DNA from: Dimorphilus gyrociliatus | Taxonomy: Eukaryota > Animalia > Annelida | Length of the DNA stretch: 64,000 nucleotides | Direction of reading: 5' to 3' | Assembly: GCA_904063045.1 (NCBI GenBank) | Contig: CAJFCJ010000051.1 | Span: 1-64,000 of the forward strand | Shown: piece by piece, positions 31,195 to 53,672 of the stretch | Layout: the number at the start of each line of letters is the position of its first letter | How positions within the stretch are numbered: the stretch's first letter is position 1 | Notes under the pieces: model-generated | The model's input: the letters and a program-made list of their open reading frames with translations, nothing else | The model's database searches: none | What the model was told of the DNA's origin: nothing | Program-made: the position numbers and the translations under genes

Positions 31195-31201
31195 AACAAT
31201 C

Positions 31202-32115
31202 AGGGTTTGCAAAAGGTTTTTTTTGACTAAATCAAAAAAGAGAAACACAATTCTCACACTTCAAGAGTCCCAATTGTTTTTGGGAAGCAGTCAAAGAAAA
31301 AATACACCAAAATTGACATTTAAAACAATTTCCAAAAGAAAAGATTTTTTCAAAAAATTTTCAAAAAATTTTTTTCTGAAATTTTTTATTATTTCCTACC
31401 TACTCGACCTACCATGGTTTTGTCCCCCTCTCTATTAAATTTGTATATCTGGGACTCTTCAGGGTCTAATATAAAGGAATGAATGAGAGGTTTGATAATC
31501 TTAATAAAAAGCTTCTCTCCAGATTTTGATTTATTTGTTTGTTGATAAAGATTCTTGTGGGGTAAAAATTATAGATAAAAAAATAAAAAATACAAAATAC
31601 CTAATAGTTTAAAGCTTTTAAAATAACAAGGTATATAGAAGGAAGAATATATAGGCTTGAATAAAATGTAAGATTAAAAGAATAGTAAGTTGAGGGCATA
31701 TCTCTCCTACCCATTGGAAATACAGAAAGAAACAAAAATTGAAGACCTAAAAAATGTGGGAAAAAATAAGTTGGGTAAATAAATAGCAACCAGGATTTGA
31801 ATAACAATAAAAGTTGAAATAAAGATTAAACAATAAAAAATAGAAAATTAAAAAATTAAAAAATTAAACAATAAAAAATATAAATTAAAATTAAATAAAA
31901 GTATGCATTATATTACTGTTTATGGCTAGTAGATGAATTGAGTATGTATACAGGAATTGGTTAAATTATTGAAAATATATAAAATAAGTGAGTGTAAATG
32001 AATGAAGTGTGCTACATATGTTGTATTATGTAGAAAGTATGGTTAATTTAATTTTATGGCTAAAGATTAGAGGATTGTTAATTTGAAAATTATTAAATAA
32101 TATTGTTTGAAGACT
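31202..32115 (-). mobile_element. 5'-truncated family I telomeric retroelement 3' end (~0.9 kb)
   Basis: Aligns along its length with 32783-33672, starts at GGGTTTGCAAAAGG, contains a hammerhead, and ends abruptly at GAAGACT followed by GGGTTAGGG. Confidence 0.85.
31406..31466 (-). ncRNA. Minimal type I hammerhead ribozyme, probably inactive (G12A)
   Basis: Minus strand: GACC CUGAAGA GUCCC-loop-GGGAC AAA ACCAUGGU A^GGUC. The core GAA is changed to AAA. Confidence 0.75.
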
Positions 32116-32291
32116 GGGTTAGGGTTTGCAAAAGGTTTTTTTTGACTAAATCAAAAAAGAGAAACAGAATTCTCACACTTCAAGAGTCCCAGTTGATTTT
32201 GGGAAGCAGTCAGAGAAAAAATACACCAAAATCGACATTTAAAACAATTTCCAACAGAAGGGTTAGGGTTTGGTAAGGGTTATGGGTTAGG
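32116..32291 (-). mobile_element. ~140-nt family I 3' fragment flanked on both sides by telomeric repeats
   Basis: GGGTTAGGG, then the family I terminus truncated at ~32258, then agggttagggtttggtaagggttatgggttagg. Confidence 0.8.
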
Positions 32292-32431
32292 CCACTCACA
32301 CAACTCTGGTAATGTTTTTGGGAACTGGTTAGCTAGTGTTCCAGTGTAATACCTAACTTTTAATCAATGTTAGGTAGGGGTTCTCCTTGGTCAGGATTAT
32401 AGATTTGGGCTCCGGGTTAGGGTTAGGGTTT

Positions 32432-32752
32432 GCAAAGGTTTTAATAAGAGTTGAACTTGACACTATGATCTAAGTCCTGGTAAAAGTTGAGTAGCTTCCA
32501 CCAATTTTCATGAGTTCCAAATGGAATGCAAGAGTGTGGACCTCCTGCACAGGTTTGACAGAGAAAACAATATCCTGGTTCATGATGTAAAAAATTTTTT
32601 GAAAAATATTTTTTGAGTAACTGACCTACCATGGTTTCATCTTCCCCTTTAGCAAAGACTCATCAGGGTCATTTCTGAGTATAGCTTCTCTTACTGCTAT
32701 CTGGAAGGGGAGGCTAGGATCAATTCTATAACTGGATCCCACCTTGCATTTA
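32432..32752 (-). mobile_element. Diverged family II telomeric retroelement 3' end
   Basis: Follows GGGTTAGGGTTAGGG at 32414-32428, aligns with 52452-52775, contains a hammerhead, and is capped by (TTAGGG)4. Confidence 0.8.
32622..32671 (-). ncRNA. Minimal type I hammerhead ribozyme
   Basis: UGACC CUGAUGA GUCUU-UGCUAAAGGGG-AAGAU GAA ACCAUGGU A^GGUCA: intact core, GUA triplet and palindromic stem III. Confidence 0.85.
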
Positions 32753-32754
32753 AT

Positions 32755-32782
32755 TTAGGGTTAGGGTTAGGGTTAGGGTTAG
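32755..32782 (+). repeat. Interstitial telomeric repeat (TTAGGG)4TTAG
   Basis: Read directly; joined to the next family I terminus. Confidence 0.95.
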
Positions 32783-32978
32783 CAAAAGGTTTTTTTTGAC
32801 TAAATCAAAAAAGAGAAACAGAATTCTCACACTTCAAGAGTCCCAATTGTTTTTGGGAAGCAGTCAAAGAAAAAATACACCAAAATTGACATTTAAAACA
32901 ATTTCCAAAAGAAAAGATTTTTTCAAAAAATTTTCAAAAAATTTTTTTCTGAAATTTTTTATTATTTCCTACCTACAC

Positions 32979-33039
32979 GACCTACCGTGGTTTCGTCCCC
33001 CTCTCTCTTAAATTTGTATATCAGGGACTCTTCAGGGTC
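32979..33039 (-). ncRNA. Minimal type I hammerhead ribozyme
   Basis: GACC CUGAAGA GUCCC-loop-GGGAC GAA ACCACGGU A^GGUC: intact CUGANGA/GAA core. Confidence 0.82.
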
Positions 33040-33695
33040 TAATATAAAGGAATGAGTGAGAGGTTTGAGAATCTTAATAAAAAGCTTCTCTCCAGATTTT
33101 TGATTTATTTGTTTGTTGATAAAGATTCTTGTGGGGTAAAATTATAGATAAAAAATAAAAAATACAAAATACCTAATAGTTTAAAGCTTTTAAAATAACA
33201 AGGTATATAGAAGGAAGAATATATGGGCTTAGATAAAATGTGAGATTAAAAGAATAGTAAGTTGAGGGGATATATATCTCCTACCAGTTGGAAATACAGA
33301 AAAAATAAAAAATTGAAGACATAAAAAATGTGGGAAAAAATAAGTTGGGTAAATAAATAGCAACCAGGATTTGAATAACAATAAAAGTTGAAATAAAGGG
33401 TAAACAATAAAAATTGAAAATTCAAAAATTAGAAAATCAAAATTATAAATTAAAATTATGCATTATATTATTGTTTATGGCTAGTAGATGAATTGAGTAT
33501 GTGTACAGGAATTGGTTAATTAATTGAAAATATATAAAAAATAAGTGAGTGTAAATGAATGAAGTGTGCTATGTATGTTGTATTATGTAGAAAGTATGGT
33601 TAATTTAATTTTATGGCTAAAGATTAGAGGATTGTTAATTTGAAAATTATTAAATAATATTGTTTGAAGACTAACCTTTTTTTCTTGTATTGTAT

Positions 33696-34170
33696 TTTCC
33701 AACATTCATTTACTTTGCCAAGTGATAGGTTGTTCTGGCTAATGAATGGATTGGAAAGGAAATTGGATAATTGCTATTTATCTACCTATATATTGTTTGT
33801 AATGAATAATATAAGTATTAGGGAAGATGTTAGGATTCCTCATTCTTTTTTGAGTTTTGATTTTGATTTGTTTGTTGTAAGAATGGAAGGAATCTATATT
33901 TGTTAAATCTTTTACCAACATTCATTTGGTTGATACCTGAAAGTTGGCTTTTAGTTAATGAATGGGTTGGAAGCTGTATAAGTATGGATTATAATGATTT
34001 TGTTAAGGGAACCCTGAACCAATAAGATATATTTTAATAAGTATAAATAAGACAAAGGAAAATATTTGATAAAGTGAATTGCAAATTTGTACCTTAAAAC
34101 TTATTCTCCAACATTCATTTTGTTAGTCCAAGTATGTGCAGTTGATTTTGGCTAATGAATGGATTGGAAA
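33696..34170. repeat. Three spaced hairpin repeats (TTCCAACATTCATT...AATGAATGGATTGGAA)
   Basis: Copies at ~33696-33757, ~33914-33970 and ~34108-34169, with conserved complementary arms and variable ~30-nt loops. Confidence 0.7.
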
Positions 34171-34359
34171 AAATATCTATTAGTTGGGTTAAGTGAGTTC
34201 CTGTATGTAAGTTGGTGCAAAAAAGAGTGTGTATATTGAGCTTAAGATAAATAAAAAATAAAAAATAAAATGCTACCTACATGGCTTGGATTTAAAATAT
34301 GCAAGAAATTCAACAAATTACAGAATTTACAAAAGTCCCCAAAAATATGATAAAAACCT

Positions 34360-34520
34360 CATGAAATCTAACAAAGTCTACAAAGTCTAAAAAATCCACA
34401 AAATCAACAAAAGCCAAAAAATCTACAAAATGCTTAAAATCTGCTTTAAAATGCTTAAAATATGCTTTAAAATGCTTAAAATCTGCTAAAAATCTGCTTA
34501 AAATCTGCTTAAAATCTACC
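34360..34520. repeat. Minisatellite of 9-11 and 21-nt units (AAAATCTGCTT / AAAATCTAC)
   Basis: Tandem units read directly. Confidence 0.8.
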
Positions 34521-34837
34521 ATCAGAAATCCTAAATCATCATAATTGAATGTATAATGATTCTTAAGAAAATAGTACAGAATTTCATCATTTGGCTTTAA
34601 CAATAAAACATTATCAACACAACAAACTCCAACAATTTACCAAAAAAGATAGATTAGTTCACTGTCACATGTATAAGAATCTTTATCTTTTTTAAAAAGA
34701 AAGAAAAAGTTTTGAATCTTTTGCTCAAATATTCTAATTTTGAATTGAAAAAAGTCAATCTCATGGAAAAAGTTTTGTTTTAGTCATTGGTTATGGCTTA
34801 TGTATTAGTTCCTGTCATCCCACATTCTCTTTACTGG

Positions 34838-35100
34838 TTGGGGTTTGCAAAAGGTTTTTTTTGACTAAATCAAAAAAGAGAAACAGAATTCTCACACTTC
34901 AAGAGTCCCAATTGTTTTTGGGAAGCAGTCAAAGAAAAAATACACCAAAATTGACATTTAAAACAATTTCCAAAAGAAAAGATTTTTTCAAAAAATTTTC
35001 AAAAAATTTTTTTCTGAAATTTTTTATTATTTCCTACCTACACGACCTACCACGGTTTCGTCCTCCTCTCTATATTCATTACCAAGGACTCATCAGGGTC
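34838..35100 (-). mobile_element. Family I 3' terminus of a probably long element extending rightwards through the repeat array and ORFs
   Basis: GGGGTTTGCAAAAGG terminus near-identical to 32783-32980 up to the hammerhead, after which it diverges. Confidence 0.8.
35044..35100 (-). ncRNA. Minimal type I hammerhead ribozyme
   Basis: GACC CUGAUGA GUCCU-loop-AGGAC GAA ACCGUGGU A^GGUC: intact core. Confidence 0.85.
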
Positions 35101-38029
35101 TAGTAACCTACACCTACAGAGAGGTTGAAGATTTCCAATAGGGAATTCTCTTCTTCAGGTTTTTTCAATATATATCATATCAAAAGTGCTATTTACAATG
35201 ATACTGTTTAATGAAATATATACATACCATTCTTTCATTGAAAGATGTATATTTTGAAAGGAATTGGAGAAGTGGTACATTTAACTATCTTCTTTTAATG
35301 TGGTGTTGACTCCTTAATCTTCAAACTACAAATGAATCCAGTGAAAAAATGCCTACATTGTATATATAATATATGGAGAAGCCTGTGGGAACATGCCACA
35401 AACATATCAACTATAGATAAAATTATATAATGCCAATGTGAGAACATAAAGTTAGTAAAGTTTAAAAGCACAAATAATCAAATTAAACCTATGTGTGTGA
35501 GAAAGTTCTACAAACATGCTAAAGAGAGATAAGAGTTTGTAGTAATTTGATATTTACATTATGGTATTAGTCTATATACTGAATCTAAAATCTCTATCTT
35601 AATTAACAACAGAGTTAGTGCTACCCTGACAAATATGTTAAAAAAGGCTTTTATGAAAGAAAGAACATGTAAATTTTAATGGTGCCAAAACTCTGGAACC
35701 TTAAGAGATGATTGAACTTTGTAAAAAGATTTATGATAGGCGTAGTGATGTTAATCTATGTACAGAATTACAAATATACATCTTAATTAACAACAGAGTT
35801 AGTGCAGCCATGACAAATATTTTGTATAGGTTTATATATGAGAAATAATTTGATGGAGCCATAACTCTGGAACCATAAGAGATAACTCAATTCTGTAAAA
35901 AGAATTGGAATTGGTATAATAATATTAAATTATGTACAAAATTTTAGAGCTCTATCTTAACTATTAACAAATTTAATTTTTTTCTGACGAATATTTTTTT
36001 ATATACACTAATAACCCTGTTTAAATACAACATTCAAAGAAAATCATATCTTAGCAACTACTGCACCAATTTTTGATTAAATTTGAAATAAAATTATTGT
36101 CACAAAAAATATGGACAATTCGAAAGACATTTGGTACATTTATTAAGTATTTCTCATTTAAAAAATATTAATTATGATCATTATTTATATAAGGAAACTG
36201 CATTAAACTTTAAGTCAACGTAGCTCCCAAACTTTAAGAGATAATTGAATTCTGTAAAAAGATTTGAGATTAGGATGCCAATATTAGTAAATATACAAAA
36301 TTTCAAAGCTCTATCATAATTAATAACAAATCTAGGTTTTTTTTGACAAATATTTTATTGTTATGGCATACAACTGAGATTAAACATATTGTTCATAAGA
36401 TTCCATATCTCAGAAACTACTTGGCTGATTTGGATCAAATTTGAACCAAAATTAATGGCAAAAAGAAATCCAGAAAAACAGAAACATATTTGTAATGTTA
36501 ATTTAATATTTCCCATTTAAAATATATCAATTTTTATAATGACTTAATTAAGAAAAATGCATTAAATTTTAGTTCACCACAACTCAAAAACTATAAGAGA
36601 TAATTAAATTCTGTAAAAAGATTTGAGATTAGGATACTAATATTAGTATAAGTACAAAATTTCAAAACTCTATCATAATTAATAACAAATTTAGTTTTTG
36701 GATGACAAATATTTTAATTGTCAAAACAGAGTTTATATATAACATTCATAGGAATCCATATCTCAGCAACTACTGCACCGTTTTTGATCAAATTTGAAGC
36801 AAAATTATTGATAGAATGAGCCTATATTAAATTCCAATGAATCAAAATTATAAAATTAATTGAATGCAAAGTAATTTTTGTTTTAAAAAGTTGCTTTAAA
36901 AAAGATAAAGTTATTGTTTGTGTAATTGTTTCAAAAATTGCTTCATTAATTTCAATAGGTAAGTTTGCTCTTTTTTATATTGTATGAATAAATAAATAAA
37001 AATAAATAGAATTTAAAGGAAAGTAATTGAATAAAGTGATGAAAAAGCAACAGACAACATTCTACATATTTTAATAGATTAAAATTGAACAAAAACTAAT
37101 TATAAAAACTGATGTTAATTAGGATAATTTAACAATTTTACTGACATTTTGCTGTGTACTGGTGTAGTCTTTTTTCAAAAACTTTAACGCAACATAGCTC
37201 CCAAACTATAAAAGATAATTGAATTCTGTAAAAAGATTTAATATCGGTATAATAAAATCAATCTATGTACAAAATTCCAGAGCTCTAACTTTAATATTAA
37301 CAAATTTAGTTTTTTTGAACATCAAATATTTTTGTTTATATAGGCTTTTAATAGTGTTTATATATAATGTTTCTTAGAATCCATATCTCAGCAACTACTT
37401 GACCGATTTTGATCAAATTTGAAGTAAAATTATTGGCAGAAGAAGACATGGATAATTAGAAATATATTAGTTACACAAAAACAATATTTCCATTTTAAAA
37501 AATAAAATTCTTTTAATGAATTATGTAAGGAAGATGCACTAATCATCAAGGCAACGTAGCTTGGAAACCATAAGAGATAATTGAATTCTGTAAAAAGATT
37601 TGAGATTGGCGTACCAATATTAGTTTATGTACTTAATTTCAAAGCTCTATCTTAAATTTTAAGAAAAAGAGTCTTTTTCTGACGAATATTTCTTTAAATA
37701 TATTAACCTGTAACAGTGTTAAAGTACAATGTTCAAAAGAATCCATATCTCAGCAACTAGTGGGCCGATTTTGATGAAATTTGAAGCAAAATTATTGTCA
37801 GAAGATGTTTATAAACTTTATAAAAGAATAAATAAGAAAATATGTAAGACAGTTGTTTAAAATTGAAAACTAAAATTTATTAGAAAAAGGTAGAAAAAAC
37901 TACAAAAGTTGAAATACACAAAGATATATATATATATATATATAGAAAAAAAGTACAAGAAAAAGAGAAAACTGAATATAAAAGTTAAAAACATATATAC
38001 AAATAAAAATGAAATAGAAAATATTGTTT

Positions 38030-38455
38030 CTAAACCAATTTCTTTTCCAAAAAAACATATTTTATAAATTTAAGAAACATTGTCTGCTCTTTTTTATATT
38101 TGTTTGGGTCGAAATCAATTAAATGAAAGCCACTCCAACCCAAATTATTTTCTATCCTACTTGGAAAATATTTTTTTAAAAAGTAGATATCCTTTGGCAT
38201 ATTAGGTTTTAACTTTAAAAAGTCAACAATTTCAAATTTCAGTTTCTTTGGATATTCTTTCAAAATCACAATAATTTTTTTATCCTTTAAAGGCCACTCA
38301 ACCAGCAAATATGGAAAAGTATTGAATGATAACTTTTTGAATAATAATAATTGAACATTCTTAATATTATTTTTTTGAAAAATTTTTTTAAAATCTGGAA
38401 CTTTAATGTCAGTAAAATAGTCTGATATAATTACAGTTTCTGTACAAAAATCCAT
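38030..38455 (-). CDS. SGNH/GDSL-like (degenerate) module ORF, 'B-'
   Basis: ETVIISDYF...VQLLLFKKLSF...LLVEWPLKDKKIIVIL shares its pattern with four other ORFs in the window. It is in frame with the upstream ORF across one TAA. Confidence 0.55.
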   Translation of the reverse strand: MDFCTETVIISDYFTDIKVPDFKKIFQKNNIKNVQLLLFKKLSFNTFPYLLVEWPLKDKKIIVILKEYPKKLKFEIVDFLKLKPNMPKDIYFLKKYFPSRIENNLGWSGFHLIDFDPNKYKKEQTMFLKFIKYVFLEKKLV

Positions 38456-38518
38456 TGTGGGGCAAAATGTTTTTAAAATTTTTCTTTGTTTCCTTTTTGG
38501 AAAAAATCTTTCAATTTC

Positions 38519-39226
38519 TTACAGAAAATTGAAAGACCTAATTGCTAAATGATTGTTGTTTTCCAAATTAAAATACCTTTCATTAGCATCTTTAATTTTT
38601 TTACAATTTTCATTATCATTTTCATTTTCATTTGATATTGGTATTGGTGATGAAGTTGATGTGGGTGCAAAATGGCTTGTTTCATTCTGGTTTTGATTAT
38701 CAATTATCAATGTTGAATTGAGTTGTTCATTTACTTCTGGTTCAACAAGTTGATCAAAATACATTTCTTTGATTTCAGCAATTACATCATTAAATATTTC
38801 AGCACCCTCCATACAATTGGGTTTAGTCTTTAGTACTTGATAAATGACATATGGTAAGGAATTCTCCACTTGTCCCCAACTTGCAGGAGTTTTAAGAAGA
38901 GGTTTTAAATAAAAAAATTGATTTAAGTCAATTTGTTCTTTGCAATAATTCTTGATCTCAGTATAGACATTCTCTTGAAATTCCTCAAAGTGAAGTTTGA
39001 TTCTGTTATATAGCTTTTTGTGTTCATAAATTTTTAAATTTCCAAGTAATGGATAACTCAAAATATGACTATTGAAAAGAGTCTCAAAAGATTTTCCAAA
39101 ATTATTGTTCATTGAATTAAAAACAATTAATAGAATATGCTTGATTTGTATCAAGAGACTATTATAAGTAAAACTTGTAAATGTTGGGTTAATTTTTTCT
39201 GGATGGGGATATCTTTGAAAAGTCAT
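38519..39226 (-). CDS. Retroelement accessory ORF 'A-' (unknown function)
   Basis: Likely ATG at 39226 (MTFQRYPHPEK) after the acceptor tttcctttcctcag. IKHILLIVF...FETLFNSHILSYPLLG matches LKHQLNYIF...LENLLTTHVNQYRLLG in ORF 45305. Confidence 0.6.
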   Translation of the reverse strand: MTFQRYPHPEKINPTFTSFTYNSLLIQIKHILLIVFNSMNNNFGKSFETLFNSHILSYPLLGNLKIYEHKKLYNRIKLHFEEFQENVYTEIKNYCKEQIDLNQFFYLKPLLKTPASWGQVENSLPYVIYQVLKTKPNCMEGAEIFNDVIAEIKEMYFDQLVEPEVNEQLNSTLIIDNQNQNETSHFAPTSTSSPIPISNENENDNENCKKIKDANERYFNLENNNHLAIRSFNFL

Positions 39227-41860
39227 ATTCAGTAGCTGAGGAAAGGAAAAAACACTCTCAACATATTGAACAAAAAGCAACAAAAAATAAGCATTTTTAA
39301 ACAATAAATATATAATGAAATTTTGTAAATAGATTTGTTTTTGGCGTATGGAAATTAATCTATGTACAAACTTTCTAAATAAATTAGTTTTTAACATGAC
39401 GAATGTTATTATATACAGCCTATGTTGAGTAGATTGGCAAAAAATTTTACGTTGCCATAACTTTGGAACCATAGCAGATAATTGAATTCTGTAAAAAGAT
39501 TTAGAATCGGCATACCCATATTACTATAGATACCAAATTTCAGAGCTCTATCTTACTTAACACCAGAGTTAAGTTGTACATGACGAATATTTAAAATAGG
39601 CCTATAAAAATTTTTTTATCAAAAGTGAACGTTCCATAACTTTTGAACAATAAGAGATAATTGAATTCTGTAAAAAGATTTAAAATCAGTGTCATAATAT
39701 TAGTGTATATACCGAATTTCAAATCTCTATCTTAATTATTAAGGGAATTAAAATTTTTGTGACAAAAATAAAATATAGGCTGATATATGATATACTGTCC
39801 AAAAGTAACTTATCACTCTTGATAGAAATTATCAATAATTGAAAGGGAAATAATTGTTAAGAATTATTAAAAAGCAATAGACAATAATCTATATATTTTT
39901 ATAGATACAAACTTACAAAAATTAATTACAAACAATGAAATTAAATGGGGTAAATTAACAAATTTACTTACATTTTGTTGTGTTCTATAGCAGACAGAGT
40001 GACCAAATAACATTGAGTTCGTAAGATTTTAACTACTTAACAGACACCTCAGCAGTACATTTTTTTTTAATATATTGCTCAAAAAAGGGTTCATACTAAA
40101 CTTTGACACACTGTCGCTCAGAAATGGTGAGAGATAATTGATTTCTGTAAACAGATTTGGAATCGGCATACCCAAATTACTATATATACTGAATTTCAAA
40201 GCTCTAACTTGAATATTAAGAAAAAAAGTTTTTTTCTGACGAATATTTATGTTATATATAAGGTTATACAGTGTTTATATATAGCATTCATAGAAAACAC
40301 TAGATCTCAGCAACTACTGGGCCGATTTTGATCAAATTTGAACCAAAATCATTGTCAGAAAAAGTTATTGGCTGTTGGCAATACATTCGTTATATCAAAA
40401 ACATATTTCCAACTGAAAAAATAATATTATTGGTAATGAATTGTATAAAGAAAATGTAATAAAGTCCATCACAAAAACTGTGAAAGATAATTGATTTCTG
40501 TAAAAAAAATTTATGATTGGCATAATAATATCAGGTTAAGTACAATTAAAAAGATATAATTAATTATTTCCTGTTGAAAAAATATTTGTAAATATTATTG
40601 AAAATTCTGTAAGTGTTTGGAGAAAACTATGCAGTACATGGTATAAGTTTAAATATAGGATTGGTTGTTGTACACTATCTAATCACATAAAGATATATAT
40701 ATCTTCAACCATAAGATATATATATATATATATAAATTATTACAGACTGAAGGGATTATGTATTTATATTAAATAAATAATTTACAATAAACAAAACAAA
40801 TATATAGCCTCCTTGAAAATATCATTTATACAGTGTATATTGCCTTATATTGAGTATGTAGAACAGACTTTCAATGTTGCCATAACTTCTAAACCATTGG
40901 ACATAATTAAAATCTGTAAAAAGATTTGAGATCATTATATCAATGTTAATGTATGTACCAAATTTCAGCCGTCCATATCAATTAATAGCAAATTTAGTTT
41001 TCACTTGCCGAATGTTAAATATATTGGCTTGGATAATTTTTTTTAACGTTGCCATAACTCTTCAACCATAAGAGATAATTGAATTCTGTAAAAAGATTTG
41101 AGATCTGTATAATGGTATTATTCTATATTCCAAATTTCAAAGCTCTGTGTATACTGAAAGCAAAGGTAATTGTTAAAAGAAAAATACAATTTATGGTTAA
41201 ACATTAAAAGATAAAAACAGTTGGATAAAATATGAAGAAAATAAGTGTGATATATTACCAAACTTTATATATGTATGCATATTATTTATATACTAAAATG
41301 TAAAGAATAATAATACAACTGTTTTTACTTTTACTTTTTAAAATATTTATAAAATGCAGGTCCATATTAGTAGTTCATAATTCAATTTTGTAAAGAGATT
41401 TAGTATCAGCAAAAAGACATAAAACTATGTGATAAATAACAAAATTGTGCTTAAAATAATAAGAATATTAAACATTTTATGACGAATGTTTGTAATGGAA
41501 CTGTTAAAAAATAGAGTTCATTGAAAATCAGATCTCAGCAACTACTTGGCCGATTTTAATGAAATTTGAAGCAAAATTATTGTCAAGATGATTACAAATC
41601 AGATAAAAGTCAAACAAATTTGTAAAGTGATTATTACAATGCAAAAAATTAATTTTTATCAATATATCAAGTACTTTTTCAGAGTTATGCCCTAGGTATA
41701 TTGTATTGTATTTTTTATGCATATGTTTTAAATATGTTATATGAAACAAAAAGTAATAAATGATTATTTCAATTAATAATACTTTGAGATTATTTCATTT
41801 AAGATGATCAAAGCATTTAGAAAATTGAAAAGTGAAAGTTAATTTATATATCACCAACAA

Positions 41861-44800: not shown

Positions 44801-45074
44801 CAACAGAATGCCAGTATTTTATTATTTAATTCATTCACTATTTAGTTATTATTAAATGATGCATTCTATATTTATTAATACTTATTATATATTTCAATTG
44901 TCAGAAATCAATAGAAACAAAGAACAAACACATTATGTCTTCTACAGTTCTAGGCGACTTCTGTCATAGTCCTGGGCGACTTCTATCACAGTTCTGGGCG
45001 ACTTCTGTCACAGCTCTGGGCGACTTCTATCAATTTCTGGGCGACTTCTGCCCTGGGCGACTTCTGTTGTTCCC
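41861..45074 (+). mobile_element. Complete Mutator-like (MULE) DNA transposon 1
   Basis: 9-bp TSD CACCAACAA (41852-41860 and 45075-45083); ~140-bp TIRs built from tandem GACAGAAGTCGCCCAG units; internal transposase. Confidence 0.93.
42339..44358 (+). CDS. MULE transposase with N-terminal PHD-like finger and FLYWCH domain (4 exons, intact)
   Basis: Exons 42339-42438, 42488-43575, 43632-43784 and 43843-44358 join in frame. C-x2-C..C-x2-C..H-x2-C..C-x2-C finger, FLYWCH-like LLVHNNNSF...WIC...C...H.H, and catalytic motifs WYVDGTF, LDYE, GCLFHWNQA and RTNNDVEGFHNRL. Confidence 0.92.
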
Positions 45075-45304
45075 CACCAACAAGCACAATAGGACACATG
45101 AACCTATTATTGTTTTCTTCTGATGGCAAGCACTGTACATCAAACAATAACATATTACATAAGAGAAATACCTTGAGAAGTCCCCCATTCACTATTCATA
45201 ATTGAATTAATCAAACACTAAACATAAAAACAAATGTAAACAAAAACCTTTCAGTTTAAACTTGGACTTTGTCAAAGATTGACATTAATTCTTAAAAGAA
45301 TATT

Positions 45305-45730
45305 ATGGATAATCAATGGGTTATACCCTCTTCAAAATACCACAAAGATGTAGAATATAATATTGCAAATTTAAAACATCAGTTAAATTATATATTTTCA
45401 ACTGACTACAATATAAAATATTCAAAATCCCATATAAACTTGGAAAATCTTTTAACAACACATGTCAACCAATACAGATTGCTTGGTGGCACAACAATTA
45501 AAAAAATGAATGAAGATGAAGAAGGTTTTGAGGATTTGAAAAATGGTATTTCAAAATTAATCAAAATTTCAAAGAAAAGCATGAAAAAATACATTCAAAG
45601 TAATATGGATTTTTCAAAATATGTTCATTTACCAAAATTAATGGAAGTAATTAAGGAAGAAAAAGAATTTAAAGAAATTTTGGACTTGTGTGAAAAAAAT
45701 ATTTATAGAAAAAATAAAAAGTGTCTTTAA
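45305..45730 (+). CDS. Retroelement accessory ORF 'A+' (paralog of 38519-39226)
   Basis: Shares the KHxL..(I/V)F..(L/F)ExL...H...YxLLG motif; PSSKYHKDV resembles PSQYEKDV in ORF 54169. Confidence 0.6.
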   Translation: MDNQWVIPSSKYHKDVEYNIANLKHQLNYIFSTDYNIKYSKSHINLENLLTTHVNQYRLLGGTTIKKMNEDEEGFEDLKNGISKLIKISKKSMKKYIQSNMDFSKYVHLPKLMEVIKEEKEFKEILDLCEKNIYRKNKKCL

Positions 45731-45766
45731 AAATATGGTGAAAAAAAAGAAAAAATTTGCTTAAGT

Positions 45767-46816
45767 GTGAAAAAAGAATTATTAACATTTTATAGAAAAG
45801 TACATAAATTGGAAGAAGAGATTATACCACAACAAGAAAACAATACTACAACAGAAAGAGAAATTGATCAATCAACAAGACCAGTTCCAATAATAGCAAC
45901 AGAAGAAATTCCACAAACATCAACTATTGCAGACAACACTATTGCTACAACACTAAGAAAACAAACTGCAATAACTACAACAAGTGATGAAGAAATTATT
46001 GAAGCTGCAGCCAGAGCAGAAGCAGCAACAACAGCATCAGCAGACACTGGAACAACTCTTCAAATAAGTGATTGTAATGCAGTCAATTATACACAAATGG
46101 ATATTGGTTTATTAGAAGAATTGGGTATTAATTTAGAAATTGGCCAAGAAATTGAGATGGAAGAGATAAATGAAGAAGAAGAAGAAGAAGAAGAAGAAAT
46201 AGTAGATAAATTCTACATTGATTTACAAAAAAAAAATGAAAGAAAAATAGAGGTAGGTAATATGTTGATTGTTCAAAGAACTAATAATATTATTGTAGAC
46301 ACTGGTTCTTTAAATATAATTGATAAAACACAAAAAATATTTCTCAGAAAGGTAAAACCACAATTTACAAATGTTACTGATTATACCATTCTTACAGATC
46401 AATTTATTAAGTTAGGTGATAAAAAATGGGAAAAGGTACAATCTATGATTAAAACAGAAAAAAAAATACAAATATTTTGTATTGAAGATTTAAAAATGGA
46501 TGATTCACTTCCAATTATAACTGGTTGGAAATTAATCACCAGTAATCTTTTTATATATTTAAAGAATATTCCAAAAGACATAGACATAAAAAAAATTGTT
46601 AAGCAGTTACCTTTTTCCAAAAATAATTTGTGTTTTACAAAAAAAACTTTTGACAAAGAAATTTGTCAAAATTTGAAAGTCATGGGATGTAAGTTATTAA
46701 ATCATCCCAATGAAATATTCAAAAAAGAGGAAACTCTTGTTATTAGATTGCTTAAAGAATTAATGTCTGCTGTTAAATGTTATTATGTTGTTCAAAAATA
46801 TTTGCTTTGTTTTTAG
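45767..46816 (+). CDS. Thr-rich/acidic linker plus SGNH-like module ORF 'B+'
   Basis: In frame with ORF A+ across a single TAA (45728-45730); no ATG at the track start (GTG). DYTILTDQF...IQIFCIEDLKMDDSLPIITGWKL...LFIYL; an AATAAA-like signal lies near 46920. Confidence 0.6.
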   Translation: MKKELLTFYRKVHKLEEEIIPQQENNTTTEREIDQSTRPVPIIATEEIPQTSTIADNTIATTLRKQTAITTTSDEEIIEAAARAEAATTASADTGTTLQISDCNAVNYTQMDIGLLEELGINLEIGQEIEMEEINEEEEEEEEEIVDKFYIDLQKKNERKIEVGNMLIVQRTNNIIVDTGSLNIIDKTQKIFLRKVKPQFTNVTDYTILTDQFIKLGDKKWEKVQSMIKTEKKIQIFCIEDLKMDDSLPIITGWKLITSNLFIYLKNIPKDIDIKKIVKQLPFSKNNLCFTKKTFDKEICQNLKVMGCKLLNHPNEIFKKEETLVIRLLKELMSAVKCYYVVQKYLLCF

Positions 46817-47336
46817 GCATTTGTATTAGTTATATATAAATTTATATCTATATTGTAATCTGTTTCATTTTATCTGTTTCATTTTTTAAATGTATATATT
46901 TTGGTTTGTTTGAAAATAATAAAAAAACTTTAAAATACAAAAGATAGTAATTATTCAATTTTATTATTTATCAATATTTTTTTCGTCAGGCTTTTACTTT
47001 CACTAAAAAAATTTCACTTTCACTGAAAAATTTTTTACAGGTTAATGTTTTTCTTTTCATGTGGGAAAATATTTCCAATTAGAATTTATAATAGTATTAT
47101 AATGACTTAAGACTGTTTTAAATTTTGTAAATATATATATATATATATATATCTTTAGATAATATCATTAGTATCCTGTATAATGTTAATTAACATGTGT
47201 ATATTTATGCATTTTCTTGATAGTTAAATGAATCAACTGAAATGGTATATATTGTGTTTGGTATCTAAATTATTGTTTTTATTTATATAATAATTATATA
47301 TTGATTCAATGTTACAAATACTGTATATATTAAAAT

Positions 47337-47440
47337 GGGTTCAGGGACAGTTCGCCCCTGGACAGTTCACCCCATTTTAGAGACAGTTCGCCCCATTTTA
47401 AGGGACAGTTCGCCCTATTTTAGGTGACAGTTCGCCCCAT
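47337..47440 (+). mobile_element. Solo TIR of a third MULE-like element
   Basis: Five tandem GACAGTTCRCCC units after a GGG terminus, similar to the MULE1 TIR unit. No inverted partner seen in the window. Confidence 0.55.
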
Positions 47441-47644
47441 ATGTTAAAGGATAGCTGACATACTTTTTTGCTCTTCTTTATAACTTTTGAAGATAAGATA
47501 TGAGATATAAATGATAAATGAATGATATTTAGTAATTCTATTTGTATTATCAAGATGGAAATAACTAAGAAAACAAGTACATGATGTAAAATGTAAAATG
47601 AAATGTTATGCAATATTCAACTGAACTAAATGATTCAAAAGATC

Positions 47645-47672
47645 AGGGTTAGGTCTTGGGGTTAGGGATTAG
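47645..47672 (+). repeat. Degenerate telomeric repeat tract
   Basis: agggttaggtcttggggttagggattag. Confidence 0.65.
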
Positions 47673-48059
47673 CACAATCAGTACAGACTGGTAATCCCAA
47701 AAGTGCACACACACTTATAACCAAGCTTTGGGTAAGGGTTGGTGTAGCTATTGAGGAGTTGCTATCTTGAGTAGCAATTCCCCAGCCTAAGCTGTAACTG
47801 TATCTCCAACAAAACCACGTACAAATTCTCCACAAGGGTGAAGAGAACCTGTATTTCGCAACTAAAACAATTCACCAATTAAAAAATCCTCACAATATTT
47901 CGGAGGTATTCCTCCTTTATCAAGTGAGAGGGGAAAAGTGGCTGGTTAGATTGCCACCAGACTGATCTCTGAGAGGCTTACTATACCTTAGGATAGGTAC
48001 TGGGTCAATCCCACACTTTATCTCGCAACAAATCACCTATTTGGTGGTCAGTAAAGCAA

Positions 48060-48249
48060 GTCGACCACTGACGAAAGTTGAAATTTCAACTTGCTCCGAT
48101 CGTTATGAAATTTTACACAGTGCTAGATCTAATTGAACTGAGCAACTGTGCAAAATTTGAACGAAATCGGCCCAGCGGTTGCGGAGCTATGGAGCTTTGA
48201 AGTTAACGGTGGTAGGTGAGGATGGCTGACTGGCAGCCTTAGACTCTAT
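48060..48249. mobile_element. CpG-retaining non-autonomous element, left part (interrupted by MULE2; right part ~51177-51960)
   Basis: Contains the B-module motif in both orientations (CCGATCGTTATGAAATTTT...AAAATTTGAACGAAATCGG). CpG is locally frequent on both sides of MULE2. Confidence 0.45.
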
Positions 48250-51176
48250 GGGGGTCATGGAAAACGTCCACAATGGAAAACGTCCACAATGGAAAACGTC
48301 CACAAATTTATGGAAAACGTCCACAGACAATATGGAAAATGTCCACACAAATATGGAAAATGTCCACAGATTAAATGGAAAACGTCCACAAGTAAAATGG
48401 AAAACGTCCACAGCTGAAATAGCAAATGTGCACAACTTTAATAGAAAGAATTTTCTTAACATAAAACCAAAAAAAATATTTACAACAAAGAACTTGAAAA
48501 TTAATTGATAAAGGATTAGTGAGATATCTTAAAAGTATAAGAAAAATATTCATTTTATACCAGTTTTCTTTTCTAGTTATATCTACTTCCTGTTTTTTTA
48601 AGCTGTTTACTTTTGAGGAAAATTCATTGAAACTGCTTTAAAACTGGTGTTATATATGTGTAATAATTGTAAGTATTATTTTTCTTTATTTATCATAATG
48701 TATTATTATTAATTGGCAGGTAAAAAGTAGCGAATTTTGAATTAAATGAATGTTTTAAATGTAGCATTACATCAGGATTCAAAATGGCAGCATGCAAAAG
48801 TTGTAACAAACACTTTTGTGGAAAGGAAAAGCAAATGAAATGTGTACTATGCAAATACATATTCCATGTCAAATGTATTGAAGGTCAGACTCTGTGAATA
48901 ATTTCAGTTTCACATTTTAAATATTACTTTTTAAATAGGAAAATATTGCACTCAATGCAAAGAAATAAACAATAAAGAAGTTATTATACAACTGAATAGA
49001 TGCAAATTCAAAAAAACTCAGCAGAATGAATTGAATGAAAGTAGTGCTATGCAAATGATAATGCCACCATCACAAATTGCACCTCAAGAGGAAGACATTA
49101 ATGACAAATTTACTTCTCCAAAACCATCTGATATTAATTTTTCCTTTCATTTTGGAGTTTATCAAGAGCACAGGATAGCAGATGAAATGGTTAATGATGA
49201 AGAACATATTGCAGATTTTTCTAGTGAATATGCAGTGTCAACAGAAATTCCAGAAACAGTACCTGACTTTTGCAATGAAGTGGAAATTTCAACTGAAAAT
49301 GATCAAGTATTTGAAAAAAGCATGTGTGATGAAATTGAGCCATTCAAAATTCTTGAAAAGGCAAGTGCTAAAGGGAAAAATGTGTTGATACATAATGGAT
49401 ATTGGTATACATTAAAGTGTAATCGTGGTGAAACAACATACTGGACTTGTGGTGTAAGAACAAAGAAGCAAAAGTGCAAAGCTGCAATTACTGAATTGAA
49501 TTACTCCTATACATTATCTAAAGCTGAGCACTTTCACAGTCCTGTTAAAGACATTGAAAATAAACTTATTTTGAAAAAGAATGTCAGGGAGAAAGGCAAA
49601 GTTAATGTTCATCAAAATGGGAGAAGCATTGCAGAGGAAACTCTAATTGAATTCAACAAAAATGAATCTTTACCATCAATAAAATCTTGCATTGAAGTTG
49701 TTAACTATCACAAAAGAAAAAATAGACCAAAAGAGCCTACTGGTTTAAGATTTATTATAAAGCAAATGTTCTTACCAGAAAACTTCTTGAAAGTGGATAT
49801 TTTTGAAAAGCAAACAAGAGTAGTAATATTTGCAACAGACCATCAACTTAATCTTTTACAATCAACAAATATTTGGTTCCTTGATGGAACATTCAAACCT
49901 GCAAATGATCCATTCAAGCAATTATACTCCATTCATGGATTTCTAAAAAAAGATTCAGAATTGAAACAAGTCCCTCTCTTATTTGCATTCTGCTCATCCA
50001 AGAAAAAATCAGCTTATAAAATTATATTCAAGGTAAATAAGATAAATTCAAAATGTATTTCTTTAAATACTGTTAATATTTTATAGGCTGTTTTTAAACT
50101 GACTAATGGATTTCAACCAAAAACTGCCATGCTAGATTTTGAAGAGAGTGCATGGAGAGCTATGAGTGAATTAGCACCTGATGTTAACATAATTGGATGT
50201 CTTTTTCACTGGTGTCAAGCAATTTACAGAAAGATTGGGGTAATGTATAAATAAAAAGTTTTTTATAACTTTTTAATAGTTTTTATTCAATCATTTATTA
50301 ATAATAGGAGCTTGGACATCAATCACAATATAAAAATCGCACAGGAGAATGGTTTGCAATGAGACTACTCCTCTCTCTACCATTTCTACCATCAGATCAC
50401 ATCAAACATCAATTTGAAAGTATAAAAGATTATCTGCAAGAATGTAATGAGTTATCTCAACTGATTTCTTACATTCAAAATACATGGATTGATAGTACAA
50501 TTTGGCCTCCATCAGCTTGGTCATGTTTCAAAAGAGCAATTCGCACAAACAATGATCTGGAAGGCTTCCATCAAAAATTTAACTCATCTTTTGGGAATAG
50601 AACATCATTTTACACAATTGTTCAAAAGTTGAAACATGAAGCAGATCTAATCAATGTGTTTGAAAAGCTTCTATCTGAAAAGAAAATCTGCAGAAATCAG
50701 AGAAAAACTTATAAGCATCTACAAAAAAAAATCTTTGAAGCTTGGGAAAGTTTTGAAAGATCTGAAATGAATGTTTCTCAACTACTGCAACTTTGTTGTT
50801 CAATTTATCATCCATAATGTGTGATTTTTGAAGTTTAAAATGTTAGTTTCTAGCACTGTTTACTTTACTTTTCTTGTAATGTAACATTTTACAATTAGTT
50901 GCTAAATACATTTTCATAAGTTTGATAAGTTCTGGTGTACATAAAAATTTATCAATAACTTTATTTAAATATTCATTTATAATATACATTTACCTAAGAA
51001 TTACACTTTTTCTCTTTTAAAGATATTTGTAGTGGTTGTGGACGTTTTCCATATATTTGTGGACATTTTCCATATTTCTGTGGACGTTTTCCATATTGTC
51101 TGTGGACGTTTTCCATAAATTTGTGGACGTTTTTCATTGTGGACGTTTTCCATTGTGGACGTTTTCCATGACATCC
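48250..51176 (+). mobile_element. Complete Mutator-like (MULE) DNA transposon 2
   Basis: 9-bp TSD AGACTCTAT (48241-48249 and 51177-51185); TIRs of tandem ATGGAAAACGTCCACA units; internal transposase. Confidence 0.93.
48784..50817 (+). CDS. MULE transposase with N-terminal PHD-like finger and FLYWCH domain (4 exons, intact)
   Basis: Exons 48784-48883, 48939-50032, 50087-50239 and 50308-50817 join in frame. CKSC..CVLC..HVKC..CTQC finger, LIHNGYWY...YWTC...C...HFH, and WFLDGTF, LDFE, GCLFHWCQA, RTNNDLEGFH. Confidence 0.92.
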
Positions 51177-52416
51177 AGACTCTATTACCAGTATCTCGAC
51201 CCTACGTTCTATAGTAATTAGAGGGTAACCTTTCAAAAATCGCAGGTATAACAATCAGGTAAGTCACTTTTCATAAAATGTAACAGAAGAAGACCTAGAT
51301 TCAATTCTATGTTCCTTCCTCTGTACATATATGGCCAATCCTATTTGCATGGGGCGGTCCAGAGCCCTATTCATTACCGCACCATGAAATATAACTGAAT
51401 CTAAGATAAGGGGTGATTTCACCTCCAATTTGGACTTAGAATATTTTTGAAAAATTTATTGACTTTTTTCAGTCGAAATTTTTCTAAGTCCAAAACCTAA
51501 CACTGTGTTAGGCTGGACTTAGAATATTTTCGGAAAATATTTTTTCCAAAATCTTTCTAAGTACCCAGGCGAATGTAACGTTTTTACAGGTAATTAACAT
51601 GACAATGAACTTAGAAAATTAATGATTTTCGCGAAATCTTTACAAGTCCAGAGCCTCAGTGAAGGCCAATTTTTCAAAATCGTCGGATTGCTTTCAAACT
51701 TGAATCCAAGCTTGCCCCTACGTTGGAAAGATAGAAAAAAATATTTTTATTTTTCTACCCGAACTCGGAAAATTTTCGATTTTCGAAGCTCAGCCACTCC
51801 TGAACTGTAAGAGCTACATGGTCGTGTAGCATATCAGTGAAAAGCTCTTTTCGAGCTCTATCACCTCCAACAAAATTGAAACGTCTAGGATGACGCATAA
51901 CGAAACTCCTAAACGGCCCAGATTTGGGACATTTTTGTCACATCACTGATTTTTTTGGATCAAAACTAACTCTTTGATATATATATCCTTAGGGTACTAT
52001 GTAGCATAAGGTCTGTAGACCCATGTTAAACTTTCAACCCCTTATATATATCAGACACACTTGTTCCTGTATGTAAGGAATACACTGAGAGATGGTTGAA
52101 GGTAGAGGTTATGGTTACATTAGACTGCTCATGTATGATTGTCAATGGGTTGTCTTTGTGTTGATTGGGAAACCAGAAGGGACCTTTTGTTGGGGAACTT
52201 TTGTTCACTGCCAACTGTCAACCATCTGTTCTCTCATAGAGAGGTGTCTCCCCACAAATTACCCCATTCTTTATTATTTAACAATTGTTCAGAACAGGTC
52301 CCATGTCTGTCCAGTCTGTACCTTCTTCTCTGCTGAGTTAAGTGTTGGTTCCATTATCTTAGGTTAGGGTTAGTTGTAAAGTTTCACTAATTTGTATCTT
52401 TTTAGGGGGCTATAGC

Positions 52417-52450
52417 TTAGGGTTAGGATAGGTTAGGGTTAGGGTTAGGG
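52417..52450 (+). repeat. Interstitial telomeric repeat tract (with more TTAGGG at 52359-52373)
   Basis: ttagggttaggataggttagggttagggttaggg, read directly. Confidence 0.93.
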
Positions 52451-52646
52451 TTTTTGTAATGTTGAACTAGATACTAAGATCTAAGTTCTGATGAAAGTTG
52501 AATAACTTCCACCAAAGTTTCAAGAGATTCCACAATGGTATGGAATGCAAGAGTAAGAACACTCTGTACAAGTAAGACTATCTACAACTGATTGATGAAA
52601 AATGTTCAGTTTATGTTTTAATTTTTTGATGGTTACTAAGAATAGT

Positions 52647-52696
52647 TGACCTACCATGGTTTCGTCTTCCCCTTTTGCAAAGACTCATCAGGGTCA
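52647..52696 (-). ncRNA. Minimal type I hammerhead ribozyme
   Basis: UGACC CUGAUGA GUCUU-UGCAAAAGGGG-AAGAC GAA ACCAUGGU A^GGUCA: perfect core and stems. Confidence 0.92.
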
Positions 52697-53255
52697 TTTC
52701 AGAAGATAGCTTCACTTACACTACCTTGAAGGGGAGGTCAGGACCAATTCTGCAATTGTATCCTGCCTTGCATTCCATTTTTGTCATAAGATTGATGAAT
52801 GTGTATATATTGAATGGAAGAGGGAATGTTTTGTAACTGTATGTCTAATGATGTTTGTGTGTGTTTTTTGTAATGTCAACTTGTGGAAGTTGAATTTTGT
52901 AATCAATGTATGTTTGTTTGCATGAATGAACATATGAGTATTTTTGTGTTTTGTAATAATTTTTGTTTTAATTTTTTTGTAAGCTGGATGATCAGACATA
53001 GAATCCAACTTGTACTGTTCTTCAAACCCCTTGACTCTCCTTACTTCTGATTAGGTTTTTGTAATGTTGAACTAGATACTAAGATCTAAGTTCTGATGAA
53101 AGTTGAATAACTTCCACCAAAGTTTCAAGAGATTCCACAATGGTATGGAATGCAAGAGTAAGAACACTCTGTACAAGCAAGACTATCTACAACTGATTGA
53201 TGAAAAATGTGTGTTCAGTTTTTGTTCTAATTTTTTGATGGTTACTAAGAATAGT

Positions 53256-53305
53256 TGACCTACCATGGTTTCGTCTTCCCCTTTTGCAAAGACTCATCAG
53301 GGTCA
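53256..53305 (-). ncRNA. Minimal type I hammerhead ribozyme (identical to 52647-52696)
   Basis: Same sequence as the copy at 52647-52696. Confidence 0.92.
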
Positions 53306-53672
53306 TTTCAGAAGATAGCTTCACTTACACTACCTTGAAGGGGAGGTCAGGACCAATTCTGCAATTGTATCCTGCCTTGCATTCTATTTTAGTTGGATGA
53401 TTGTGTTTTAGAGGATACATGTTTGTAATTTTAATTTTGGAACAGATTTTTTTCTTTGTACAATGTTTGAGTTATGTAGACTGTATAAAGTAAATTCATA
53501 TTTGTCTGATAAGTCTTATTTCAACAAGGAAGAAATGGCTTTGTTTAATGAATTAATTTTGAATGGATATGGTTTTTACTTGACAAAGAAACAAAAATTA
53601 CTTCAAAGAAACAATATTGTACTTTTCTTTGAACAGATAAATTATAGAAATGTATAACTCACCCTGGTTTTC

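Follow-up and report, generated by a model that had tools for sequence, protein, structure and literature searches.

Minimal hammerhead ribozymes and telomere-complementary tails in a probable subtelomeric chain of Penelope-like retroelements of the annelid Dimorphilus gyrociliatus

The reverse transcriptases (RTs) of Penelope-like elements (PLEs) are the closest relatives of telomerase RT, and PLEs that attach to telomeres without an endonuclease (EN) have been used in arguments on the origin of telomerase. In the literature cited here, such EN-free, telomere-attaching PLEs are only Athena, in rotifers, and Coprina, mostly in fungi, protists and plants, both of which lack the EN domain. Minimal hammerhead ribozymes (HHRs) of the dimer type occur in the flanking repeats of metazoan PLEs (PMC4209133). 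As summarised in two reports, Athena and the Athena-based Terminons use reverse-complement telomeric repeats beside an HHR to attach to G-overhangs, and Terminons are giant units that carry GDSL esterases and other open reading frames (ORFs) and form 5'-truncated chains split by telomeric repeats (PMC6431247, PMC8557442). In the PAc element of Anolis, the RT starts inside a stem-loop that is AC-rich, 85-92 nt downstream of the HHR cut, and needs RNA reaching ~146 nt past the cut; HHR cleavage can be dispensed with, protein assists the ribozyme, and in vitro it is mainly uncleaved RNA that serves as template (PMC11167929). Here we describe 64,000 nt of the annelid Dimorphilus gyrociliatus (assembly GCA_904063045.1, contig CAJFCJ010000051.1, positions 1 to 64,000; hereafter the window), which contains hammerheads, a Penelope-like RT gene and telomeric repeats. 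All locus-level results are drawn from this one window.

We consider it probable that the region is a subtelomeric chain of EN-deficient Penelope-like retroelements, together with some non-autonomous passengers, added 3'-end-first via a 3' cis-module. This module would comprise a minimal type-I hammerhead, a tail of ~200 nt and an AC-rich tip of the form ...AAACCC(UAA)n. The chain extends from ~30585 to the right edge of the window and consists of at least 10 head-to-tail units, mostly 5'-truncated at differing points and all on the minus strand (Table 1). Each joint holds 0-4 CCCTAA repeats and every unit ends in an AC-rich tip. Telomeric junctions were found at 52450-52400, 34843-34838, 32778-32755, 32428-32411, ~32262 and ~32115. 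The tips run into CCCTAA repeats, which agrees with an earlier claim, made from the letters of this DNA (hereafter the sequence-only reading), that the termini are telomere-complementary. The telomere repeat of annelids is TTAGGG. Because TTAGGG reads 5' to 3' on the plus strand toward higher coordinates, the chromosome end lay to the right, and each unit was presumably laid down 3'-end-first.

Hammerheads were located on both strands of the 64 kb with a descriptor of the minimal type-I form (in order, stem I with 4 bp or more, CUGANGA, stem II with 3 bp or more, GAAA, 2-13 nt, UH, stem I). This gave exactly five canonical matches, each on the minus strand, whose CUGANGA motifs begin at 53300 (copy A), 52691 (B), 35096 (C), 33035 (D) and 32666 (E). 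Relaxing GAAA to AAAA added a single match at 31462, copy H, whose core GACAAAACC carries the change G12A; the full core and the GUA triplet are present in the other five of the six copies. By chance the descriptor gave a mean of 0.09 matches per window, with a maximum of 2, in 300 dinucleotide-preserving shuffles. We thus recovered the six minimal hammerheads that the sequence-only reading had reported on the minus strand, one of them a G12A mutant, as well as its GUA triplets and cut positions (52651, 53260, 35047, 32982 and 32626). Its identification of the minimal Penelope type is upheld by the type-I layout, by a palindromic stem III of 2 bp and by the Penelope-like RT gene upstream of copy A. 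A seventh, decayed copy lies at ~30700-30585, outside the range of that reading, and resembles family II, which groups copies C, D and H; family I groups copies A and B (Ia) and copy E (Ib).

Searching with curated hammerhead models, as had been proposed, was less productive: Rfam returned no hammerhead match at gathering score in the window, and copy C alone reached a sub-threshold score (Hammerhead_3, 35050-35122, minus strand, 27.9 bits against a gathering score of 48.5, E 0.033). The scores are weak because stem III is only 2 bp around a palindromic loop, a form that curated models cover poorly. The remaining Rfam matches in E-value mode, to miRNAs and snoRNAs, were set aside as chance. 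A covariance model built from the six copies detected no additional copy in the window or at a second D. gyrociliatus locus described below (L001). Metagenome DNA was scanned twice by hammerhead pattern: the first scan gave 0 matches and the second gave 10, all bacterial or phage, with a long stem III followed by coding sequence and with no telomeric repeats.

In all copies stem I is open-ended (4-5 bp), stem II is a hairpin of 5-6 bp, and stem III is formed by an A-U and a C-G pair around a palindromic loop. Its letters are ACCAUGGU in four copies, ACCGUGGU in C and ACCACGGU in D. Of the pair cells in the six-copy alignment, 95% hold standard pairs; two pairs of stem II show compensatory U-A to C-G changes between families, and C11.1 is changed to U in copy E, giving a G-U pair. 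Families whose flanks cannot be aligned have the same ribozyme core, stem I and cut site. This pattern bears on whether the hammerheads play any part in the cycle of the element or persist as inert relics or selfish passengers. Naiad and Chlamys PLEs thrive without HHRs, which their authors suggest may parasitise PLEs (PMC8557442), and two of the six copies here have changes in or near the core (G12A in H, C11.1U in E). However, copies H and E are dead 5'-truncated inserts, in which such changes are expected as decay after insertion, and a relic would hardly keep core, stem I and cut site identical, with covariation in stem II, between flanks beyond alignment. We rate this account as very improbable.

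Cofolding with ViennaRNA predicted a homodimer of copy A at -37.4 kcal/mol, compared with 2 x -12.9 (-25.8) kcal/mol for the monomers. The predicted dimer is a classic double hammerhead, in which stem II forms within each strand, stem I forms in trans and stem III becomes an intermolecular helix of 8 bp. Cross-family dimers were also predicted. The heterodimer of C and D was the most stable (-41.2 kcal/mol, with a perfect 8-bp stem III), and no hammerhead formed in the homodimer of D. The stem III loops of these two copies, CGUG in C (35043-35101) and CACG in D (32978-33040), are exact complements. The assignment of the hammerheads to a type that acts as a dimer is thus supported by the models, in which the double hammerhead of copy A is more stable than two monomers.

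The identical hammerheads A and B lie 609 nt apart on one strand of a head-to-tail chain, so that an intramolecular double hammerhead is plausible. This arrangement would suit a role of the ribozymes in 5'-end processing, in the manner of PLE pseudo-long terminal repeats (pLTRs) or of HeT-A: the 3' module of a distal unit would drive transcription into the next unit, hammerheads of adjacent units would pair and trim the multimeric read-through RNA to unit length, and the tail with its repeats would become the next 5' leader. PLE pLTRs do carry a promoter and an HHR, and trimming of tandem precursors is a standing hypothesis (PMC4209133, PMC8557442, PMC11167929). Against this, a cut at the element's own 3' hammerhead would strip off the telomere-pairing tip, and most downstream units are dead 5'-truncated fragments. 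We therefore hold this explanation to be quite unlikely.

Tail length was taken from the cut to the last A preceding the terminal CCC and ranged from 198 to 205 nt (Table 1). The sequence-only reading had given ~197-206 nt for all six copies; the lengths stand, but the copies are not independent observations. Tails are 98% identical between A and B and 99% among C, D and H, whereas Ia and II tails align no better than chance (z about 2). The unalignable families claimed earlier therefore hold for Ia against II; copy E, however, recombines both. The upstream part and the hammerhead of this copy are of the family I type. Its tail begins with ~92 nt that have no relation to Ia and weakly resemble II (z 4), continues with an Ia-like distal part (z 22) and closes with ~20 nt (...CCUUUGCAAACCC) that by eye agree with the terminus of II. 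Copy E thus reads as a mosaic of both families. Since tails within A/B and within C/D/H are near-identical and E is a mosaic, the coincidence at ~200 nt concerns two, at most three lineages. Were lengths free to vary from 50 to 400 nt, such agreement would, by rough estimate, arise by chance a few percent of the time, so that a constraint on tail length is suggestive but not established. Within the Ia module (52445-52800, minus strand), the first 10 nt, GGAAUGCAAG, exactly complement a tail segment, CUUGCAUUCC, situated ~100 nt past the cut; both segments are also conserved in copy E, without covariation.

Comparison of units revealed that bodies and tails do not travel together. Units A and B share a module of ~345 nt at 96-99% identity, made of 97 upstream nt, the hammerhead and the tail, while the sequences farther upstream are unrelated; the two modules are direct repeats 609 nt apart, split by unrelated sequence and a CCTAA junction. 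Unit C shares with D and H only the hammerhead and the tail (100% identical tails), and their bodies are unrelated. In blocks anchored on the cut, C and D are 58-64% identical upstream (random expectation 59 ± 4%), 75-85% over the ribozyme and 100% through the tail, and A and E are 80-95% identical upstream and through the ribozyme and drop to 55% right after the cut. The block GACGAAACCNNGGUAGGUC, which contains the cut site, is identical in both families, as is stem I. The steps in identity at the ribozyme indicate that tails behave as exchangeable modules and that bodies and tails reassort, with junctions inside the GACGAAACCNNGGUAGGUC block.

These steps speak for the model put forward in the sequence-only reading, in which cleavage would free an RNA of ~200 nt ending in ...ACCC(UAA) that could act as a docking or priming module. 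As worked out here, this tail, with a 5'-OH, would dock on the G-overhang and prime, and the RT would copy it and then jump to the 3' end of a cut body, rebuilding the ribozyme in the cDNA. The coincidence of the steps with the ribozyme (C against D, A against E), the interchangeability of tails conferred by a common stem I and GACGAAACCNNGGUAGGUC block, and the preserved length of 198-205 nt all fit. Nevertheless, none of ~10 units starts at the cut site, and in G, F and J, which consist of tail sequence only, the truncation lies within the tail. All six copies keep both ribozyme halves contiguous with the tail, which means that the reverse-transcribed templates were uncleaved or rejoined. 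Copy E has further breakpoints at ~+93 and ~20 nt from the end, so that recombination is not bound to the cut; this speaks for a tail prone to recombination in general. In addition, the ribozyme core is the sole sequence common to the families, so that homology-driven copy-choice or recombination of DNA would put junctions at that site even if nothing were cleaved, and HHR cleavage is dispensable for a canonical PLE in vitro (PMC11167929). Reassortment could arise equally from cleavage and re-ligation, from template jumping between cut tail and cut body, or from homology-driven copy-choice or recombination, and the junctions cannot separate these. In our view the freed tail is an improbable intermediate.

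The composition of the chain also bears on a circular intermediate. Unit E is a module of ~345 nt with no body, starting at the module boundary, and its size falls within the range of animal non-LTR retrozymes, which have been argued to derive from PLE pLTRs (bioRxiv 10.64898/2026.07.22.740005; PMC7229834). Short or module-only units might be cut out by two hammerheads and closed into circles, which the PLE RT would copy starting at an internal CCCUAA. Yet neighbouring units differ in family and in truncation point, unlike rolling-circle copies, and the window contains no tandem array of monomers, which makes such circles very improbable here. Fragments F and J represent further families, which brings the kinds of 3' end joined to this chromosome end to four or more; unit F has no other match within the window. 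The two oldest units, H and I, both end in ...CAAACCCTG (31201-31205 and 30585-30590) and abut non-telomeric sequence. This suggests that they were added to an end with little or no telomeric tract, as in the healing of a broken end via microhomology.

The coding capacity of the chain resides in unit A, which contains an intact ORF of 1541 aa. This ORF gave no match to the Pfam RT or GIY-YIG families even at E up to 10, a PDB sequence search returned nothing relevant, and exact sequence look-up found no record for it or for ORF353. In contrast to Pfam, a large protein search yielded 424 matches at E up to 1e-3, mainly to PLE proteins. The best RT match was a D. gyrociliatus protein (P0001; 5.7e-171, 43% identity to a 902-aa fragment, 41% over 1001 aa with the full ORF), and a protein from a Logan assembly (P0002) was the other of the two best; ~118 further Penelope-like proteins matched at 30-40% identity, many of them with a CX4CXXC linker and a GIY-YIG domain. 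The ORF contains the PLE RT motifs SDKGS, FDIKSMYTNID, AMGQSYAP and YLDD. Its C-terminal region is colinear with the GIY-YIG endonuclease of its relatives (hhalign probability 90.9%, E 1e-6). However, the window protein, P0001 and P0002 all have other residues at the positions that are invariant in 10 EN-bearing relatives (the GIY Tyr, Tyr-x-Gly, two Arg, Glu, Asn and the linker cysteines). Judged by these replacements, the GIY-YIG region would be a conserved, catalytically dead remnant rather than a missing domain. The three proteins carry this remnant although they share just 26-43% mutual identity.

Residues 417-640 of the ORF were modelled with AlphaFold (pLDDT 77, pTM 0.78). Comparison of the model with the PDB retrieved PAF-acetylhydrolase alpha, TesA and sialate O-acetylesterase (E 2e-5 to 1e-3, TM 0.44-0.52), and we propose a putative SGNH/GDSL-like hydrolase fold for aa ~417-640. 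In an exhaustive phmmer search of 1.84 billion representatives, P0001 and P0002 were the only matches spanning SGNH-like domain, RT and dead EN, the others covering the RT or the RT and EN. Between ORF278 and the RT ORF, 3 kb (60024-63107) lack any ORF of at least 90 aa and may hold introns, a decayed ORF1 or an untranslated leader. The D. gyrociliatus locus of P0001 (L001, CAJFCJ010000101.1) contains no hammerhead or telomeric repeat, and a run of N follows right after the RT gene: the assembly gap begins at ~13960, ~180 nt past the gene, and the 3' module is thus absent from the public assembly, which suggests that such element ends are hard to assemble.

Taken together, we favour the following sequence of events for the chain. 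The tip of the RNA would pair with the TTAGGG overhang and prime reverse transcription by the element's RT; no DNA cut would be needed, which fits a dead GIY-YIG domain. The hammerhead and tail would be the part of the RNA recognised by the RT, which would explain the same module on unrelated bodies. The tail with its AC-rich tip is most simply understood, by analogy, as the counterpart of the PAc region downstream of the HHR. The hammerhead itself would be the ancestral PLE ribozyme, inactive alone because stem III is just 2 bp and cutting only as a pair, either in read-through multi-unit transcripts or between molecules. The productive template would be RNA with an intact ribozyme, uncut or rejoined.

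Several points weigh against this view. The 17.5 kb at 52400-34840 are not a clean retro-unit, since they contain satellite DNA and DNA-transposon insertions. Folding z-scores of the tails against shuffles were -2.6, -2.1 and -1.3, those of whole modules were -4.0 for Ia (copy B, 52445-52800), -1.6 for Ib and +0.1 for II, and fold comparison found no secondary structure common to the tails of both families; of the modules, Ia alone clearly exceeds shuffles in structure, so that these folds do not establish an RT-binding structure in common. Finally, overhang priming, recognition of the module by the RT and dimer-dependent cleavage are steps that we infer, whereas the motifs, the chain with its telomeric junctions, the RT with its degenerate EN, the shared modules and the predicted dimer folds are results of the analysis.

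Table 1. Features of the window. For hammerheads, the second number of each cut is the first nucleotide past the predicted GUA cut.
Feature	Coordinates	Strand	Description
Hammerhead A, family Ia	53256..53305	-	cut 53261/53260; descriptor, own covariance model 74.3 bits, dimer fold
Hammerhead B, family Ia	52647..52696	-	identical to A; cut 52652/52651; descriptor, covariance model
Hammerhead C, family II	35043..35101	-	stem III ACCGUGGU; cut 35048/35047; Rfam sub-threshold, descriptor, covariance model
Hammerhead D, family II	32978..33040	-	stem III ACCACGGU, exact complement of that of C; cut 32983/32982; descriptor, covariance model, cofold
Hammerhead E, family Ib	32622..32671	-	C11.1 to U; cut 32627/32626; descriptor, alignment, covariance model
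Hammerhead H, family II	31405..31467	-	G12A, GACAAAACC; would-be cut 31410/31409; relaxed descriptor, covariance model
Upstream part of family I 3' module, conserved, ~97 nt	53306..53403	-	A/B/E homology begins at AATGCAAGG; repeat families and alignment
Tail A	53051..53260	-	205 nt to last A; ends ...CAAAAACC-TAA where unit B adjoins
Tail B	52451..52651	-	201 nt; fold z -2.6
Tail C	34841..35047	-	204 nt; ends ...UUUUGCAAACCC, then CAACC
Tail D	32755..32982	-	204 nt, plus four CCCTAA repeats (32778-32755); sequence reading
Tail H	31202..31409	-	204 nt; ends ...GCAAACCCTG
Unit A	beyond 64000 to 53051	-	coding, Ia module; 5' end past window; >10.9 kb
ORF278	63108..63944	-	upstream in unit A; further SGNH-like domain paralogue
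Intact 1541-aa ORF, unit A	55398..60023	-	acidic/coiled N-terminus, SGNH/GDSL-like (aa ~417-640, putative), Penelope-like RT, degenerate GIY-YIG remnant
ORF353	54169..55230	-	downstream of RT ORF; SGNH-like domain paralogue
Unit B	53050-52451	-	Ia module and 250 nt of unrelated sequence
Telomeric (CCCTAA)n junction	52400..52450	-	three perfect repeats, then degenerate ones
Unit J	~52355-52400	-	~60-nt terminal fragment of another family; tip ...CAACTAACCC
Unit C	52400-34840	-	composite block; ends in II module
Unit D	34837-32779	-	non-coding; II module
Telomeric repeats x4	32778-32755	-	between units D and E
Unit E	32411..32754	-	module only, ~345 nt; starts a few nt from family I module boundary, right after telomeric repeats; tail 198 nt, mosaic
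Unit F	32262..32410	-	149-nt terminal fragment of a further family; ends ...CCAAACCCTAACCC, tip ...CCAAACCC; no hammerhead retained
Unit G	32115..32261	-	family II tail only, 146 nt; 5'-truncated inside tail; flanked by CCCTAACCC
Unit H	32114-31202	-	II module, G12A
Unit I	31201-30585	-	decayed II-like copy; with H, oldest part of chain
Unit I 3' end	30585..30725	-	hammerhead 3' half (GGACGAAA...GUAGGU) fused to distal tail by internal deletion; ends ...CAAACCCTG; repeat match 65%

The composite block 52400-34840 was also considered as one giant Terminon-like unit, a reading we rejected because the block contains a 180/359-bp satellite and at least two DNA-transposon-like inserts between inverted 22-bp repeat arrays. 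Satellite-like repeats at 35560-41700 (periods of ~180 and ~359 bp, 60-80% identity) fill much of the block upstream of hammerhead C, and two unannotated minus-strand ORFs (38519-39472 and 38030-38455) lie among them. ORFs with FLYWCH domains occupy the plus strand at 41867-45050 and 48257-51169 (also ~45300-47440), with 40% mutual identity and a VDGTF motif; an adjacent ORF gave a weak match to ZSWIM1-3_helical. Bracketed by the inverted 22-bp repeat arrays, they resemble MULE-type DNA transposons inserted in the chain. The body of unit D contains, at 33700-34190 on the minus strand, three copies of a hairpin-forming repeat of ~65 nt (CCAAYCCATTCATT ... AAATGAATGTTGG), near an 11-bp microsatellite at 34431-34517. 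Left of the chain lie host genes, an ankyrin-SOCS-box gene and a leucine-rich-repeat (LRR) rhodopsin-type receptor gene (LRR-GPCR). The best named orthologues of the ankyrin-SOCS protein are from annelids (Paralvinella, 53%; Capitella, 51%). The D. gyrociliatus genome paper makes no mention of Penelope elements or telomeres.

A functional analogue of this chain is provided by HeT-A, TART and TAHRE of Drosophila, which are added 3'-end-first to chromosome ends and form head-to-tail arrays oriented to the centromere. These are non-LTR elements of the jockey clade, with poly(A) ends, no ribozyme and no telomere-complementary tip, and they replace telomerase in Drosophila. Animal non-LTR retrozymes share with the locus short non-coding units such as the ~345-nt unit E, a type-I hammerhead with a weak stem III and a presumed dependence on PLEs; they form tandem arrays of 170-400-nt monomers and circular RNAs (PMC7229834; bioRxiv 10.64898/2026.07.22.740005), whereas the units here are single, mixed and capped by telomeric repeats. 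Canonical EN-bearing PLEs (Neptune, Penelope/Poseidon, PAc) are the closest RT relatives (30-40%) and have the same minimal type-I hammerhead. PAc in particular resembles the locus in its AC-rich 3' terminus and RT start downstream of the cut (~90 nt in PAc) and in an RT-binding RNA downstream of the HHR (PMC11167929). These elements keep the EN catalytic residues and linker cysteines that are lost here, and insert at AT-rich internal sites rather than at telomeric repeats. No pLTR-ORF-pLTR partial tandem is visible within the window, which unit A overruns at its 5' end.

Coprina, known from fungi, protists, plants and a shrimp (PMC13159263, PMC4209133), and Athena were compared with the locus by their published descriptions. 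Like our chain, Coprina has a telomeric location, flanking telomeric repeats, hammerheads in flanking repeats and no active EN. In contrast, the fungal and protist hammerheads of Coprina are stable as monomers, whereas those described here belong to the minimal dimer type found in metazoan PLEs; upstream of the RT, Coprina has the motif DKN and the locus DKG, and the locus carries a dead EN remnant and SGNH-like domains.

A bolder reading is that the chain belongs to a third, independent lineage of telomere-attaching PLEs, derived from an EN-bearing, Neptune-like annelid ancestor by inactivation of its GIY-YIG domain. The hammerhead would then be the joint of an exchangeable telomere-docking tail of ~200 nt, cut and re-joined or reached by template jumping, akin to a detachable telomerase-RNA-like template or anchor that any RNA with a matching ribozyme half could borrow. 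We hold this to be unlikely, if attractive. An element that keeps a recognisable dead GIY-YIG domain and already uses telomeric overhangs would mean that the transition from insertion anywhere to addition at chromosome ends has been caught midway, and that it has occurred more than once. The fixed gap of ~200 nt and the reassortment of tails offer a testable handle on the role of hammerheads in PLEs and on the RNA recognised by the RT, in a miniature annelid that is a compact, culturable and genome-sequenced host.

The closest description remains that of Athena and the Terminons, as summarised in PMC6431247 and PMC8557442. Shared with them are a PLE-type RT without a working endonuclease, 5'-truncated head-to-tail chains with short telomeric repeats, a hammerhead near the 3' end together with a reverse-complement telomeric tip, a GDSL/SGNH-type accessory domain (putative here), and a large multi-ORF unit (here >10.9 kb). 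The differences are as follows: telomeric repeats directly follow the hammerhead in Athena and Terminons (PMC6431247), whereas a tail of 198-205 nt intervenes here; the EN domain of Athena is wholly absent, whereas a colinear dead GIY-YIG remnant is retained here; the N-terminus of the RT is joined here to an SGNH-like domain, unlike in Athena and Terminons; and the host of Athena is a rotifer with tips of the ACACCC/TCACCC type, not an annelid with TTAGGG. The nearest RT relatives found for the locus are, moreover, EN-bearing PLEs, unlike the EN-deficient Athena. The locus thus matches the Athena/Terminon description in most respects and departs from it in the gap of ~200 nt, the dead EN remnant, the SGNH-like domain fused to the RT and the annelid host. 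The retention of an apparently dead endonuclease points to a separate origin of telomere attachment.

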